A stretch of 64,000 nucleotides of DNA, taken from assembly GCF_964204645.1 (NCBI RefSeq), contig NC_134030.1, forward strand, positions 3,142,778 to 3,206,777, written 5' to 3'. The stretch is from Tubulanus polymorphus. Lineage: Eukaryota > Animalia > Nemertea. This document shows, in pieces, positions 2,140 to 61,707 of this stretch. Each line of letters starts with the position of its first letter. Positions within the stretch are counted from its first letter, which is position 1. The notes beneath the pieces are model-generated. The model was given only the letters and a program-made list of their open reading frames with translations, was not told where the DNA came from and did not search any database. The position numbers were made by a program, and so were the translations under genes.

Positions 2140-9278
<7,139 letters not shown>

Positions 9279-10783: not shown

Positions 10784-11605
10784 GACAGAGTATTAGCTAC
10801 TAGCACATGATTTCATAGACATTAAATACAAAACTGTACGATATCGATTCAAATACAACAATTTCCTAAAATAAATAGCACATTATTCTACTGTTCGTGC
10901 ACCTCACTAGTCCAGCTTAATCAATAATTATCAATTCCACTCCTCTAATGTTAAATTGTGTGCAATGCAATATCATTTCTTGACAAGGTGTGAATTTTCG
11001 CTATAATATGATAATAAACACAATGAAAAAACTATTACGATAAATAAATATGTACATTTAATCAATAGACTACTGATATCATCTGTTCACTGAACCAGAG
11101 GAGTCGATCTGAACCAGAGGAGTCGATCCGCCGAAAAATGAATTATTATGTAATCTTTAGGAACCAGAAACTGAAGTATTTATTGGTCACTATACAGTCA
11201 AGATACTGTGAGACCTGCTTGATTTGGATATGGAATAATTTTGGATTGATTTGAATAGAATTCTTCCAGTTTATGAGAAATCTGAAATAAATATCATATA
11301 TATTACATACATTTATGTACTTGAACTGTATATATCCAGATGAAACTGATCCGAATTAAGCAGTTTTTCACTGTATTTGAGTGAAGGAGGGTTCTCGAAA
11401 AGGTAATACGTATTTGCTTACTTTCAGCCACCTCGCCTCATGCATGCAATTTAGAGTGATACATACACAGGGAGAAGTGGCCGATCATCCATCGATGTCT
11501 TTATCACGAATAACTGCTCAGAGTATGTATTTCAGGAAAATATTGAAAAGGAAACTGGCTTTCTACTCCTGCTGGCTGTACGCGTTATAGACCGCTGCGG
11601 TCAGT

Positions 11606-13799
11606 TTACAATGTAGCGGTCAGTGCAGCTACGATCCACGATAAAGTGAACACGAAATATCCGCTTCGGTAAAGTTCTTTCAATCCGAACCCATAACACA
11701 AATCCCACGACTGAAATAACAAAACACATTCGAAACATTAATTCCGGCAACTCGAAACGCTTGGTACCAGTCGGTAAACTGATCAAGTCGATGGATTTCA
11801 TTAACATTCAATTGGAAAAACCTTCTATTTGTCGGATTCTCAACTCAATATCCAGTCAACTCTGTATCTGGTCAGACTCACCAAGTCATTATTTGGATAA
11901 GTCATCAAATCACGTCAATTTTTGAATCTTAATTTGTATTTACGTTTCAAATTACTGAGTGCAAGTCGCCATTTGGATAAATCAAAAAAATTCGACTATC
12001 TTTGGAGAACAGGTTTGTTACGGACGTACCATGTGTCTGATACCGTTTATCAGGTGATATATAATCGGCCAGCACAGTATTGTTTTTGCGATGTAGATTC
12101 CGGCGGGTCCAATAGAGATTAGATCCATATAGTAGGGCAGTTTATGCGGCATCAATGGCATTACACATCCAAATCCACAAACAACTGTAATACAATAGAA
12201 ACATGCAACATTAGTAGTTGTAGAATAGCCTAACTCAATCACTTACCACCAACTTACAAATTCCAAGAGTTTTCCCTCATTTTTCGAAATGTTATAACAC
12301 AAAATTCCCTGAGTAAATCTCGAGGAAATTTTATGTCTAAGATGTAACAATTTAATCTTTTTTATGAATTATGTATTAAGAAATGTGTGGTCAACAACAT
12401 ATCCAAATTCCCAGGCTGTTTGCAAAATTTGTCAAATTCCAGGTTTTCCAGGTCAGTGACCAGTAGACCACTGGTAGATGGTTTCTAGAGTCTGAAACGT
12501 TGCGTCTTTACTTATTTATTTTAATTCTTGATAGATAAATTTCATTTTCAATCTTTCAAATTTGTAGAAAGTGAATTCTATTCAAATTATTAACACAACA
12601 TTCAATATCTACCGGTACAACCATTTTATGACATTTTTTTTCAAAGTTGCTTTGATTAACGATCAATCAGCAGCCTCAACAGAGACCAAAACATCTTATC
12701 AGCGCACTTTCACAGTTTCAAATTGTCGTTGCAATGGGGAAGTATATGTCTGAAAGGTTGCAGATTGATACATACAGTTAGCTATCCAATTTACCTATTC
12801 CCATTCCAATACCAGATATTCTATGCGTAATAGACAGCATCGATGTCAACTGCGCCCTAAAATATTCGAAAGGAAAATCACATTTAAATATCTTAAGTCA
12901 AATAGATTTCAACACTACAAAGGCCTAACTATACTGGACATAACCACTTTTATGGATAGAGAGAAAAACTTACGCGTAAATGGAAAGATGCGGAGATTGA
13001 GGCCTTCCGAGCTGAACTTCATTTTTATGCCAAAATTCTCTCATTTCTTCGATAGCTCTCTGATTGGTCGTTATCGGGAGACTGAAAATAAATAATATCG
13101 TCATCTTTAAGAACTGAAACGAATAAATCTTCTACATCCATTCCTCAGACTCAGGGTTTCCTTAGATCCGTTAGATTAGACAGGGTGGCCACTTTCACTG
13201 ACTATTCCCTGATGTGTACTGAATCTATGATGTTTTTACCTGTTTGTCATGAGTGGAATAGCTCGTGATGTTTGCTGTAGTAAACCTTGACGGCCGCATA
13301 ATCTAGAAAAACACATCAGAAAATACTACAATTAAAATTCGATTGATTATTGTTGTAGCTGAAACAACTACAGGTAATAACCATTACATCATAACAGTTC
13401 CCCAAAAAACTTTTACAGGTTCTAGGGGTAACCCATGTATACCTTATAATTAGATGTCTGGTATTCAGACTAAGACTAAAAAAAGGGTAGAGTCTAACCC
13501 TGGGTAATGTTCAGGTCTAAAATTAGGCTTAACGTGGATTGCGCAATCATGAAATTGGTTCTACCATCTGTAGATTGTATGAAAATATGGTAGTCCTAGG
13601 ATATGTTGAAAGGAAGGATTGTTGAGCCAGGACAGGAAGACAAGGGAAGGCGGAAATTTTTTGACATTTTCTATTTTCTAAGCCAGATCTACTTCGATTT
13701 TTACAGACTGAAGAGTTTACAATAATGCACGATACAGAGCTACAGCGTGTTAACTAATAAACAACATCAAAATCATTACCGTAACATCGATAGAGCCAT
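11606..13799 (-). CDS. SDHC: Succinate dehydrogenase cytochrome b560 subunit, paralogue A (170 aa)
   Basis: Exons 13799-13780, 13302-13240, 13081-12974, 12856-12795, 12184-12030 and 11710-11606 give MALSMLRLCGRQGLLQQTSRAIPLMTNSLPITTNQRAIEEMREFWHKNEVQLGRPQSPHLSIYAAQLTSMLSITHRISGIGMGIVVCGFGCVMPLMPHKLPYYMDLISIGPAGIYIAKTILCWPIIYHLINGIRHMSWDLCYGFGLKELYRSGYFVFTLSWIVAALTATL. Has RP.SPHL.IY, S..HR..G and H..NGIRH..WD motifs and a basic mitochondrial presequence. Confidence 0.95.
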
Positions 13800-14155
13800 T
13801 TTAACAGTCGTTTTTCTACGTTTTTTAGATGTTTTTTATTCGACCTCCACAAAACGTAGCTATCACAAGATTCACGCGATTCGCCGCAGGTCTAGGTACT
13901 TCGATATATCTCATAGAAAATAATCAAAACTATCATTTAAAACGACAAGAAATTTGGTATAGTATATTAATCAGACATAATATAGATATATTTTGAAACG
14001 AATTTTGAATTATTATTCTTGTTTATTATTGATAATTAGGGGCCAATTTATTGATCATGATAGACCAACAAGTGGAGCCGTGAATCGCGGGGTCGCTCTA
14101 TACAATTTGACGGATTTTCTCCGAGTTTTTTCATTTAAAAGCGAATTTATACAGA
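13800..14155. promoter_or_regulatory. Putative bidirectional promoter and 5'UTRs of the two SDHC genes
   Basis: Only 356 bp separate two divergent ATGs. Confidence 0.7.
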
Positions 14156-16561
14156 ATGTCGGCAATTTTGAGGTACATTTTTGCGTTTCCCTTGTAGATC
14201 GATAAACGATGTAGATTTAATCATGAGAAATATATTTTTCTATGGTTTTTACGGTCGAAGATTTCAATTCGAAACGATTCGTGGATCGAATAGTAGTCTG
14301 TCCAACTTCCGTTCGCGGTTACGTAAATGTGACGAGTTTGTTGAGAGTTTATTCTGCTGATTGAGTGGGTTTCTTTATTTTTTTTTAGGTTAGCAACACG
14401 AAGATGCCTTCTACAAAGAAGCACACCATTTATGACAAGGAGGTAAGTACCTCGCCTTCCTCTGATCACTAACTAAGACAAGTAATACTGACTCTCTGTC
14501 ATCTGTGTGAATCAAGATTCCTTGACCTAGTATTGGACAAAGTCAGGGGCGGATTTAGAGGGGGTTCAGCGGGTCCGAACACCCACTAAAATTCACAAGT
14601 TACCCTTTTTATTAGAGGCCAATGGAAAATCTATTTGAAATCCTGGATCCGCCCCTAATAGTCTAAGGCCAAAAAAATTGATACCTTGTTTCTCCGCTCT
14701 GCTGAGCTTAAATGTTGACCCGGCCGGCCGCCTATCTACCCTATACATTACTTTTTTTAAAATCGTGATCAATTTCACCATAACAGACTCGGCCGCTATA
14801 GAAATGAACTGTTTATAAATTTTATCATATTTTACAAAAATGACCCGGCCGCTGCGGAGAAACAAGGTATCATTTTTGTTTAGCCTAAATACTAGATGCA
14901 TAAGAGTCTTAACAACCCCTCTACTATAGTTGTAACTGGGGTTTTTCAAAGCTTTCTTTCTATTTTTGCCTGATTTTTTCTTTCAGTTTACCGATCACCA
15001 ATGATCAAAGAGCGATCAAAGAAATGGAATATTTTTGGCATAAAAACGAAGTGAAACTGTCGCGACCGATGTCACCACATTTATCTATTTACAAGTAAGA
15101 GTCACGTCTTTTCACACGACAGCAAGTTTTCAAATCCTTGTAGTCACGATGGAATCTCGAACGCTGCTGTGGGAATTGAAGATTCTACTTCTTATGGCAA
15201 GCAAACGATTTACCGCTCCGTGTCGCTAGTAACTTGGTCTTTCATATTGCGTGTTTATTAGTCAGAAATTGGATGAACTTTTCAAAATTTTAAATGAACA
15301 CTGAACAAATCAGTGAGTAGAAAAATGAATTTAATGTTCTGTGATGACAGGTGTCTAAAAATACAATTCAAAGTTAGTTGATACTGAACTAATCCTGACA
15401 ACATAAGACCGAGTGCTCATCACGCCATCTGGTGAGATATCTGGTGATGTGTGTGTTATTAGCGATTAATCATTATCTTCTTGTGTTATTTTATTTTTAG
15501 AGTTGAAGTCACCTCACTATTGTCAATCACTCATCGATTAACTGGAGTTGGTCTTTCTGTCGGTGAGTAATTCAGAAAAAAACAACTCTAACTTTTACAA
15601 AGACTCAAGGGATTTGTAAATTGGTAGAAAGTTTGTCATTTGCTATTTTCAGGTTTAATCGGACTCGGTTGGTTAAGTTTATACAACACTAATTTTCGAC
15701 TATTCGCCGATGGAGCTCTAGAACTGGTCGGACCGTGGGGAGTATTCGCAACGAAGGCCGTCCTCGTTTGGGGAATGGTTTATCATCTGCTCAACGGAAT
15801 CAGACATTTAGTAAGTTCACACGCAGAACCTAACCAAAAAAACGCTTCGATTTTAGTTGTAACCTGCGACCAGTTGTACAGTCATGACTTGAAATTCAAG
15901 AGTTAAGACCAGTCTAAGACCGTCTTAGTTCTACGGTGGAACCTCGTTACAGCGATCTTTGCGAGACCAGAAAATCTGTTCATTGCACGTAATGAACGTA
16001 AAGCCTAGCGCGCATCGACAGTGCGATTGGAGACAACTAGTTGCAAGGCAGTTTTCGGCGCATGAGAGGAACTGGCTGGATACGATCAGTTGCTTGAACG
16101 TGTCGATGTGAGCGAGCTTACGATTGGTAAGCGTCGATCTATCTCCAGTTCCAGCCAGTTGCCCATGTTCTACTTTTGAGCAACTGGTTGTACTCAATCG
16201 CAGTCATATCCGTCGATGTGCGCGCTCTGGATCTCGACGTTTGACATGCGCCATGGAGTTCATCCGAGATGCGTTCGGTAGCAACTAGTTGTCTCCAATC
16301 GCAGTGTCGATGTGCGCTAGGCTTAAGGATACGCCTGAAACCTGTTAGGGGTTAAACCTCTTTTGGACCTAAGTCATGACTTTGCAACTGAGGACCGAGT
16401 TCCACAGTTCTAATGGGTCTGTATTATAAATGATATTGAATTTCGGTTTGTTGCAGGTTTGGGATCGAGCCGTAGGACTGAAAATAAGTGCAATCTCTAA
16501 AAGTGGATTAGCGATGGGCGTGGCTTCGGTCGTGTTAGCGTTAGGTCTCGCAGCTCTCTAG
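14156..16561 (+). CDS. SDHC: Succinate dehydrogenase cytochrome b560 subunit, paralogue B (167 aa)
   Basis: Exons 14156-14172, 14389-14442, 14987-15094, 15501-15562, 15653-15810 and 16457-16561 give MSAILRLATRRCLLQRSTPFMTRSLPITNDQRAIKEMEYFWHKNEVKLSRPMSPHLSIYKVEVTSLLSITHRLTGVGLSVGLIGLGWLSLYNTNFRLFADGALELVGPWGVFATKAVLVWGMVYHLLNGIRHLVWDRAVGLKISAISKSGLAMGVASVVLALGLAAL. Same intron phases as paralogue A. Confidence 0.95.
14544..14657. mobile_element. Short CAGGGGCGGAT-TIR element
   Basis: caggggcggat ... atccgcccct. Related ends near 9717-9900 and 54136. Confidence 0.6.
14667..14885. mobile_element. PIF/Harbinger-type MITE
   Basis: About 30 bp imperfect TIR (ggccaaaaaaattgataccttgtttctccgc), TAA on both sides. 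Confidence 0.65.
16002..16323. mobile_element. PIF/Harbinger-type MITE nested in an older MITE (about 15868-16392)
   Basis: About 43 bp TIR agcctagcgc.catcgaca.tgcgattggagacaactagttgc with 2 mismatches, TAA TSD. Confidence 0.8.
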
Positions 16562-59022: not shown

Positions 59023-61707
59023 CTAGATTTCTCTTGTTTCTAACAGCAATAGTTTCAGACGCTTCCAGAAACGTTTTTGAGCCCGAGTTGTAGTCGGGTA
59101 ACGGAGACAGGTTACGTGTTTCATTAACGTTTTTATATATTTCGGTAGAGATTCCTCCCTTACGTCGTACAGAAACAGCAGAATGATGACGTTACGTCTG
59201 TTTTCGAGTGACGTCATCGTGGCCTGATTCACTTCGAATTCCGTCCACGTTCTGCGGATGAAAGCGTACGAAATGGGGAAAATGACCCACTTGGAATTTG
59301 TGACGGCATCAACGATACTTAAACACTCGTAGCGACCGGCGGGAAAATCACGACCATCGATGCACAACGTAAAGCTAACATCTTCCCGATCTTCGAGTTC
59401 CGGCCGTAAATAACCCATCACGAAATCGCTATCCTCTTGGCTGTACGGCAGGTAAACATCAAACCTTCTGGTCGAGAAATCAGCATCCAATTCCCGATAA
59501 CCTCCGCGTCTTTGTCTGGGTGTGTGACATTTGACATACCAGAAATATTTAACATCCCACCTGAACACATAGAACACTGTAAGTGTTATACAGATTAGTA
59601 CGACTGGACTAATCGTAAACGCGATTAGAAAATACGGATTATTACCGCATTTGATCCAGTTCGGTTCATAATCTCTTATAGGTTTCCCTCTCAGTTCAGG
59701 TGGGCCCACGCAATGTACGTCGCTATCTTCTTTACGAACCCATTCGCTAAACGCTTCTAATCTACAGTCGCATAGTAAATGGTTATTTTCCAGGAAAATT
59801 GTCTTCAATTCTGGCAACGAACGAAATACATCGACCAATTTTTTGTTGATCGTCACGATCTGATTGTCGTTCAGCTTGATAGTTTCAAGTTTTTCTTTGC
59901 CCTTCACTAAATCATGTGGAACGTGTAGCAAAACATTTCGTGACAGTTGCAAATATTTGATTTTGTCCGTGTATTTGAGGAAGTCACCACGAATCGACCG
60001 AATTCGATTCATTGACATGCTTAGATATTTCAGACGAGGAATGGGTCGAAATATACAATTCATTTCATCGAAAAATTGGCTTTGACCGAATTCGTTACTG
60101 GTTAGAACCAATCTTTCCAACGACGTTCCGGCAAATACTTCACACGAGTTATTGTCGAGGTTGAAATACAGGTTGTTAAACGCTAGATCGAGATCTTTCA
60201 AATGTTTCATTCCGGTAACGTTTATGACCGTTGGGTTCAAACCCAATTGACGCCGTATTAGAAAAGGATTAATGTGGGTTAAAATCAAGACTTCCAGATT
60301 AACCAGATTTGTAAAATCTACCGAACATGTTGGACTCGGGCACATCGTCGCATGCACCAATCGCAATTGTTTCAATGCACGGTGTTTTGGCATCTTGAAA
60401 TTATGCCCATTCGGGTTGTTGAGCTTGATGGCGCAAAAATCAAAATTCAAAATCTCCAACTTCTGGTGTCTTTTTATAAATTTCGTTATATTTAGGTTGC
60501 CCAAATTGTTCCACGATGCTTCTAAACTGCGCAAACCTTCTGGAAATTTGGGGAGAGATTTCATATTACAGAATGAAATGTCGATGTTCTGTAAATTGGT
60601 CATCTTTAACAGTGGGTTCCCGCTCATCTTGATATTTTCGTTTTTCGATAGATCCAATTCCTTGAGATTGGTGTACGGCAGAACAGAAACGAAATCTCCA
60701 TTCATTATTTCAATCGAACAATCTTTAAGGTTTATATTCGTTAACGGGAGTCGATTCAGTCCACCTAACGCCTCACGTATACCCCCGCGGAAATCATTGG
60801 AACTAACGTTGAGATAATGTAACATTTCAAACTTTGAAAAGTCTCCTTGTTTTATGTTGTTTCGATCGATCACGAGCCTTTTCAGTTTTGGGGCTTTGAA
60901 TCTATTCGAATCGACTGTTGTTATGTTATTTTCAGAAATACCCAAGTGGACAAGTTCTGGTAAATCCACGGCTGGTAATTTGTCGATTCGGTTTCTCCCC
61001 AAATATAGATGCGTCGTGTTTCGGGGAACGCTTGGAAACTCGTCAAGGTTTTTCCCAACGCATGAGACCAACAGCTGTGATGAAGACCTAAAATATCAAC
61101 AGCAAAATGGGCTATTTTATTTCAATTTCTAAATTGACGATCTCAAGAACTTTTTATAGAGGTATTGCACGGACTACTGTTTACATGCGTCATATTGGAC
61201 GTGAAATACAATAGCAGCGAACGGCGAGTTTTAAATTGAGTTGCCTTCTGCACTTACGTCCAATACGATGTCAGGTGCATTGCCAGTTTCTAGAATCAAT
61301 TTTAGAAATTAATTCTATAAATGGAATTAATCTAGAAATCCGTCTTTCTAAAACCAAGACAGATTTTTTCATCAATTTTGTACATTTTGTTTTATAGCAT
61401 GCATGCGTAGATATATATTTCAACTTTATGTAAAGCAAATAGCTTTTTTGGGCTCACTTTTCTTTCGTATTTTTGCAGTTTCTTATCTTATATTAGACAA
61501 TAATTATTAGATAAGTGAGGTGAGATTTAAGTATTTCACGTGTGACTCATTTTTGCTGATCTGTCATTACCTGGTGCAGTTGCATTTCGACGGGCAGTCT
61601 GCCGTGTCGTTCAACTGTAAGCTTTCATCATCAGATGCCGCAGCTATAACACGTAATGATAAATCCACCAAAAACAACACAGAACAAAATGAAATATGTC
61701 GATACAT
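59023..61707 (-). CDS. Toll-like receptor, single cysteine-cluster type (733 aa)
   Basis: Exon 61707-61571 (signal peptide, CPSKCNCT LRRNT) plus exon 61087-59023: LRRs, LRRCT (NHLLCDC..C..P..LRG), TM and TIR (FDVY..YS, CIDGRDFPAG, W..FE, FWKRL). Confidence 0.95.

Follow-up and report, generated by a model that had tools for sequence, protein, structure and literature searches.

A head-to-head pair of SDHC genes

The 64,000-nucleotide stretch of the nemertean Tubulanus polymorphus analysed here (contig NC_134030.1, positions 3,142,778 to 3,206,777; hereafter the window) contains two intact genes for SDHC, the large membrane anchor of complex II, each with six coding exons and arranged head to head on opposite strands with 356 bp between their ATGs. 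SDHC-A lies on the minus strand (ATG at 13799, stop ending at 11606, 170 amino acids), and SDHC-B on the plus strand (ATG at 14156, stop ending at 16561, 167 amino acids). We rebuilt both gene models from the window DNA, joining exons by coordinate for the frame check and alignment, and the results agree with the original prediction, made from the letters alone, of two complete six-exon genes with the same intron phases and spacing: All ten introns are GT-AG, and the phases 2,2,2,1,0 are common to both genes. RefSeq already annotates the pair with identical models (SDHC-A, P0002, as XP_074652403.1; SDHC-B, P0001, as XP_074652555.1).

In SDHC-A (minus strand), coding exon 1 with its ATG (13780..13799) and exon 2, a probable mitochondrial presequence (13240..13302; identical in P0002), precede exon 3, which encodes the matrix arm with a one-residue insertion (12974..13081). 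Exon 4 carries the quinone-site (Q-site) motif SxxHR and the start of the first transmembrane helix, TM1 (12795..12856); exon 5 encodes the end of TM1, a loop helix and TM2 with the heme ligand His128 (12030..12184), and the coding part of exon 6 encodes TM3 and the stop (11606..11710). The order is the same in SDHC-B (plus strand): coding exon 1 with the ATG (14156..14172), a probable presequence in exon 2 (14389..14442), the matrix arm in exon 3 (14987..15094), the Q-site SxxHR in exon 4 (15501..15562), a diverged TM1 end and loop followed by TM2 with the heme ligand His125 in exon 5 (15653..15810), and TM3 with the stop in the coding part of exon 6 (16457..16561). From exon 1 to exon 6, residue identity between the copies is 3/6, 10/18, 27/36, 10/20, 19/51 and 9/34, or 78/165 overall; the hand counts first given for exons 3 and 4 were thus exact.

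Both products are recognisable as SDHC. They score 83 (SDHC-A) and 84 bits (SDHC-B) against Pfam PF01127 (cut-off 25.8) and match human SDHC with E values of 4e-28 and 7e-27; in alignments with the human and avian proteins, SxxHR and the heme His are both present. The axial His of heme b in TM2 and the Q-site Ser and Arg, all in invariant columns, are H128, S72 and R76 in SDHC-A and H125, S68 and R72 in SDHC-B, so that the residues originally noted as kept are indeed present in both. An AlphaFold model of SDHC-B (mean predicted local distance difference test score, pLDDT, 85) has a matrix helix and three long helices (63-91, 95-136 and 143-166), and its closest fold matches are SDHC chains; the three-helix architecture of SDHC-A was judged by alignment only. 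Searching the PDB with just exon 4 gave no match, and neither did a word search with the open frame around SDHC-B exon 5, flanking intron letters included. The two proteins differ in cysteine content: SDHC-A has five (three in TM1, the others at sites where the consensus has Ala or Gly), and SDHC-B has one.

Transcription of both genes is supported by contigs from public sequencing runs in which the introns are skipped. The records of these six runs are not marked as RNA and carry no tissue, sex or hypoxia labels, and contig depth cannot rank genes. In run X5, record 16 corresponds to SDHC-A with exact CT..AC joints; splice joints in contigs are seen for exons 3, 4 and 5, and the record covers 11200-11710, with the 3' untranslated region (UTR) extending past 11200. 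Record 17 of the same run contains exons 3, 5 and 6 of SDHC-B, and the 61 letters between exons 3 and 5 fit exon 4. Bin depths in X5 fit exons 1 and 2 of both genes, including the bin at 13761-13957, whose depth fits contig 16 reaching SDHC-A exon 1, and bins whose depths fit contig 17 at SDHC-B exon 1. SDHC-A also appears as a spliced contig in run X4 (record 11), and the 3' UTR of SDHC-B may be long, with an X4 contig of 1822 nt starting at 16497. Contig depths for A and B, although unfit for ranking genes, are 11.2:7.2 in X5 and 458 versus about 28-46 in X4, which is a hint only that their ratio varies between runs by about sixfold or more. A further run, X6 (2015, same species label), has almost nothing matching the window at 90% identity and possibly represents a cryptic species or a mislabel.

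Age, descent and surroundings of the two copies

Synonymous sites are saturated between exons 3-6 of SDHC-A and SDHC-B (proportion of synonymous differences, pS, 0.78; nonsynonymous divergence, dN, about 0.54), and the coding variants, among those listed, are synonymous in four of four cases, two per gene. Because synonymous sites are saturated, the frames open and the listed variants silent, both copies are old and constrained; together with the spliced contigs, this bears out the original prediction of an old duplication with both copies intact. The intact frames, spliced contigs, pS of 0.78 and dissimilar introns rule out a pseudogene, an allele pair or an assembly duplicate.

In a full-length tree of 41 sequences, the two copies are sisters (support 97/92), with SDHC-B on the longer branch (1.19 vs. 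0.57 for SDHC-A); for exons 4-6, the branch lengths are 2.95 and 1.0. SDHC-B has more unique changes than SDHC-A in exons 4-6 against all seven non-nemertean outgroups, significantly so (p<0.05) in three of the seven. On sequence comparison, SDHC-A is the copy nearer to typical SDHC, and SDHC-B the one that has changed faster in the membrane helices. In exon 3, an insertion of one residue precedes the RPxSP motif in only four of 185 SDHC sequences, namely SDHC-A, SDHC-B, Lineus longissimus P0021 and a marine sequence, P0003, which by this insertion is probably nemertean. Because the insertion is common to these four, the duplication is placed within nemerteans, provided that no ancient conversion of exon 3 took place. 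Database searches and the tree revealed no B-type orthologue outside nemerteans, and no second SDHC was found within 10 kb on either side of the Lineus gene, which has no neighbours in common with the window.

The other two sequences carrying the insertion are unusual in their own right. The only SDHC recovered from Lineus longissimus (P0021, L027:10001-11870) lacks a counterpart of intron 2 and is strongly diverged near the Q-site, with Asn for the His of SxxHR and Phe for the preceding Tyr, and P0003 has Phe in place of the SxxHR His. As a group, nemertean SDHC genes may evolve quickly.

Divergence is graded along the protein, and the original description of a conserved matrix arm and a diverged membrane part is correct: A/B identity is 78% in exon 3 (outgroup mean 42%, maximum 77%) and 34% in exons 4-6 (outgroup mean 43%). 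Either copy compared with P0003 is 61-64% identical in exon 3 and 32-33% in exons 4-6, and because this comparison shows the same gradient, the gradient by itself is no sign of designed divergence between SDHC-A and SDHC-B. A constraint common to both copies on the SDHB-facing arm, in a lineage with fast-changing membrane segments, would seem to account for it. In the avian enzyme, the N-terminal helix of SDHC touches 12 SDHB residues (PMC13066397), and we propose that a common SDHB partner has kept the matrix arm conserved in both copies.

A different history could also produce such a gradient. The split might be older, possibly pre-nemertean, with exon 3 homogenised by ancient conversion between the inverted neighbours; the exon 3 identity tops the outgroup range while that of exons 4-6 falls below the outgroup mean, and a tree of exons 4-6 does not join the two copies. 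We nonetheless regard this history as decidedly unlikely. Exon 3 is as saturated at synonymous sites as the remainder (pS 0.85; identical codons 11/25 in exon 3 vs. 13/34 elsewhere), which rules out recent gene conversion; at codon positions 1 and 2 of exon 3, P0003 is as near to SDHC-A (0.80) as SDHC-B is; the grouping of A and B is not rejected on exons 4-6 (p-value of the approximately unbiased test, p-AU, 0.215); a stretch of some 50 nt in intron 4 remains alignable; and no B-type orthologue was recovered from outside the nemerteans. Ancient conversion of exon 3 is, in any case, a question of history that is separate from what the two proteins do.

Four of the five intron pairs are without similarity. 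In intron 4 (12185-12794 in SDHC-A, 15563-15652 in SDHC-B), a stretch of about 50 nt towards the 3' ends is some 70% alike (score 41 vs. 24 +/- 3 when shuffled); a sub-threshold Rfam match to SNORD73 (E 0.2) at 12643-12710, in SDHC-A intron 4, lies away from this similarity. The intergenic region (13800..14155, 356 bp), which holds both 5' UTRs and the promoter or promoters, has an observed/expected CpG ratio of 1.97 as against 1.14 for the window. The word GAATCGCG occurs just twice in the window, at 13873-13884 (minus strand) and 14080-14091 (plus strand), about 75 nt before each ATG and in mirror orientation. It is possibly a duplicated promoter element, but the evidence is weak because the pattern was picked after both sites had been seen and because the word is absent from the SDHA, SDHB, SDHD and NDUFS2 stretches that were read.

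Mobile sequences occupy parts of the SDHC-B introns. Intron 2 contains a small element (14671-14880; inverted ends of 27 nt) that can be taken, because of its very high contig depth, as a high-copy repeat resembling a miniature inverted-repeat transposable element (MITE). In intron 5, one MITE-like element (16001-16324; inverted ends of 44 nt) is nested in another (15871-16390; inverted ends of 20 nt) and is likewise high in copy number. Elsewhere in the window, a long open frame on the minus strand (59023-61071) encodes a Toll-like receptor with leucine-rich repeats and a TIR domain.

Shared partners, the quinone site and rhodoquinone

A profile search over the 268-Mb genome, from which diverged copies can escape (the Pfam model alone missed SDHC-B), found two SDHC loci, SDHC-A and SDHC-B only; the sole other match carries stops and has an E value of 2.8. 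The genome search returned one locus each for SDHA, SDHB and SDHD, the subunits among which the original prediction had proposed to look for duplicates, and one clear locus each for NDUFS2 and cytochrome c. A candidate second SDHD (L007) is a low-complexity match with no similarity to the SDHD locus, and no Tim18-like or second SDHD partner was found in the same search. Because the partners are single-locus, SDHC-A and SDHC-B must share one SDHB and one SDHD. At the SDHD locus itself (L025:1385-1860; on G000:C6 near 402.9-403.4 kb), partial tandem copies of one exon's 3' end, donor region included, recur in the following intron within a purine-rich low-complexity tract.

For the quinone site, SDHC-A residues 51-83 were aligned to residues 51-83 of the Ascaris chain 3vr8_C, which is of equal length there, and residues 49-84 to yeast 70-105. 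The quinone contacts are L60, W69, S72 and R76 (PMC6859908) and G73 (PMC10019194) in Ascaris, and L81, W90, S93, R97 and I98 in yeast (PMC13066397). The Ascaris pair W69/G73 is not universal among rhodoquinone users, in that Echinococcus has Phe73 (PMC10019194). SDHC-A and SDHC-B have the same residues, L, S, S, I and R, at Ascaris positions 60/69/72/73/76, such that W69/G73 is found in neither, with Ser and Ile there instead. Near the site, the copies differ at position 77 (Ile in A, Leu in B) and at position 65 (Ala in A, Val in B), the latter of which we take to correspond to the vertebrate Trp lining the pocket entrance. The original prediction stressed the residues just upstream of the Q-site, and the differences there are real, though partly trivial, since SDHC-B has at 64 the Lys that is most frequent there, and oyster shares its Glu at 66. 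The larger departures of SDHC-B are at the end of TM1, in the intermembrane loop, at a Pro in TM2 and at two Tyr in TM3. A remodelled quinone part, as initially suggested, finds no support, in that the known contact positions are almost identical and the same divergence gradient is present in the comparison with P0003.

Tubulanus polymorphus probably makes rhodoquinone, as judged from its COQ2 and kynureninase genes. In the COQ2 gene on contig C5, a tandem pair of homologous exons, 131 and 134 nt long, encodes Leu (e-like) or Phe (a-like) as the third residue (L024:2474-2604 and 3557-3690, equal to G000:C5:20101473-20101603 and 20102556-20102689), and use of both would shift the frame because each length is 2 modulo 3. 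Tandem COQ2 exon pairs of this kind mark rhodoquinone-making animals (PMC7434440), and the first diagnostic residue is reported to be the more reliable one (bioRxiv 2024.06.25.600561). In both exons, the second diagnostic position holds Ala, not Ser; thus, of the rhodoquinone-type COQ2 proposed as a check, the tandem e-like exon with Leu was found, accompanied by a gene for kynureninase (KYNU), and the second diagnostic Ser was not. A literature search found no paper linking nemerteans with rhodoquinone. This context keeps the idea of a role in hypoxia alive and singles out neither SDHC copy.

Two proposed isoenzymes and the alternatives

We lean, if modestly, towards the view that the pair supplies two interchangeable complex II isoenzymes, with SDHC-A as the general anchor and SDHC-B as a faster-evolving isoform split off by tissue or stage. 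An old inverted tandem duplication in the nemertean lineage would have produced two three-helix, heme-binding large anchors, and we infer that each pairs with the single SDHA, SDHB and SDHD. The packing of the matrix arm on SDHB would have been kept and the quinone pocket left essentially unchanged, while change would have been quicker in the membrane helices and intermembrane loop of SDHC-B. SDHC-A would serve generally, and the share of SDHC-B would be set by tissue or stage. The male germ line is the best-documented animal case of such partitioning, and a germ-line role for SDHC-B would follow by analogy.

The original prediction held that SDHC is usually single-copy in animals, and second copies turn out to be less exceptional than this implies: They occur in Drosophila (CG6629) and Hymenolepis microstoma, and also in Zymoseptoria and yeast. 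Drosophila, like Tubulanus, has two SDHC genes per animal, the ubiquitous SdhC (CG6666) and the testis-specific CG6629, and in this set of duplicates the germline-specific member is in most cases the more diverged one (PMC6154878, PMC7560327), which SDHC-B also is by branch length and by its unique exon 4-6 changes (significant in 3/7 outgroup comparisons). Tissue-biased duplicates of mitochondrial genes in Drosophila are all testis-biased (PMC5737092). The fly gene differs in that it is expressed post-meiotically and is one of many testis duplicates, whereas the other subunits are single in Tubulanus and the origin of its pair is independent. In Hymenolepis, a member of a rhodoquinone-using group, a lineage-specific sdhc duplication likewise kept the quinone positions in both copies (PMC6859908), although this is a parasitic flatworm and the event was independent. 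Ascaris suum, another rhodoquinone user, forms two complex II types, a succinate:quinone reductase (SQR) and a quinol:fumarate reductase (QFR), from alternative subunits, but there the exchange with oxygen tension involves SDHA and SDHD (PMC6859908), with a single SDHC bearing W69/G73, and the oxygen switch has been shown. In fungi, SDHC has been duplicated many times and the paralogues build working isoenzymes (PMC6941823); ZtSDHC3 of Zymoseptoria and Shh3 of yeast can stand in for the first SDHC. ZtSDHC3 has altered inhibitor sensitivity and differs at the Q-site (I78 vs. A84), unlike SDHC-A and SDHC-B, whose mapped Q-site positions are nearly all identical; and in yeast a Tim18 partner exists, of which we found no counterpart in Tubulanus. 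The Tubulanus pair only resembles these cases, and placing it in the testis class or in the Ascaris class would go beyond resemblance.

Several observations weigh against a split by tissue or stage. The runs are unlabelled and their depth cannot rank genes, and because the depth of SDHC-B in X5 is near that of SDHC-A, SDHC-B is not silent in that sample. From a short divergent promoter, co-expression is commoner than reciprocal expression. The exon 4-6 tree, as noted, leaves the two copies apart. A fly-like set of respiratory duplicates was not seen in the small sample of SDHA, SDHB, SDHD, NDUFS2 and cytochrome c, and in humans the testis bias of mitochondrial duplicates is weak and involves far fewer genes (PMC5737092).

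If the copies were instead simply redundant and co-expressed, a shared divergent promoter would hold them at a fixed ratio, for dosage or through passive subfunctionalisation, and SDHC-B, as the minor copy, would drift faster under relaxed constraint, in a lineage whose SDHC membrane segments change quickly in any case. This is unlikely, yet it accommodates the presence of both copies in run X5, the long branches of Lineus P0021 and of P0003 with their loss of conserved residues (including the SxxHR His), the same gradient in the comparison with P0003, and consensus losses in SDHC-B (the TM2 Pro, the TM3 Tyr) that have no functional theme. However, pure redundancy seldom lasts to synonymous saturation with an intact frame, and the difference in A:B depth ratio between the two runs is a further, weak point against it. 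Another alternative, in which one copy works outside complex II, as yeast Sdh3 does when it pairs with Tim18 in TIM22 (PMC13066397; chain 6lo8_C), would suit membrane parts only 34% alike, as far apart as those of SDHCs from different phyla (mean 43%). We consider it very improbable: The genome search found only one SDHD locus, the L007 match being spurious, and SDHC-B retains its heme His, its matrix arm and every Q-site residue, none of which a protein outside complex II would need to preserve. For the TIM22 role raised by the original prediction, that search thus gave no second SDHD-like partner.

Slightly less probable than redundancy is the hypoxia switch of the original prediction, in which one copy, most likely SDHC-B, would tune complex II for rhodoquinol:fumarate reduction via the heme environment, SDHD packing or lipid contacts and not by touching the quinone directly. 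The COQ2 tandem exons and kynureninase, as marks of rhodoquinone makers, are in keeping with it, as is the clustering of SDHC-B changes in the membrane part, and the exchange of SDHA and SDHD with oxygen in Ascaris offers a precedent (PMC6859908). Against these stand the alike Q-contact positions without W69/G73, the Ala in the e-like COQ2 exon and the lack of any paper on nemertean rhodoquinone in our literature search; moreover, C. elegans, a rhodoquinone user, has a single SDHC, and the helminth duplications of SDHB, SDHC and SDHD do not reflect quinone-site adaptation (PMC6859908). More doubtful still is the specific form of this idea in which, in this free-living worm, the divergent promoter toggles SDHC-A and SDHC-B by oxygen and SDHC-B shifts complex II to fumarate reduction with quinone contacts unchanged. 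Our searches turned up no report of an animal that changes between SQR and QFR through SDHC, Ascaris being known to do so through SDHA and SDHD, and nothing in the sequence ties the pair to a low-oxygen switch; if true, such a switch would be a new route to complex II reversal.

If SDHC-B is a tissue or stage isoform, as we favour, the Tubulanus pair would join the few known SDHC duplicates as a further animal case of separate origin. It would also constitute a natural pair of anchors with the same partners and the same pocket and with membrane helices only one-third identical, which would help to reveal what the anchor contributes apart from quinone binding. The e-like exon of COQ2 suggests that rhodoquinone occurs in Nemertea, outside the published list of nematodes, flatworms, molluscs and annelids, and this may prove to be as useful as the SDHC pair itself.

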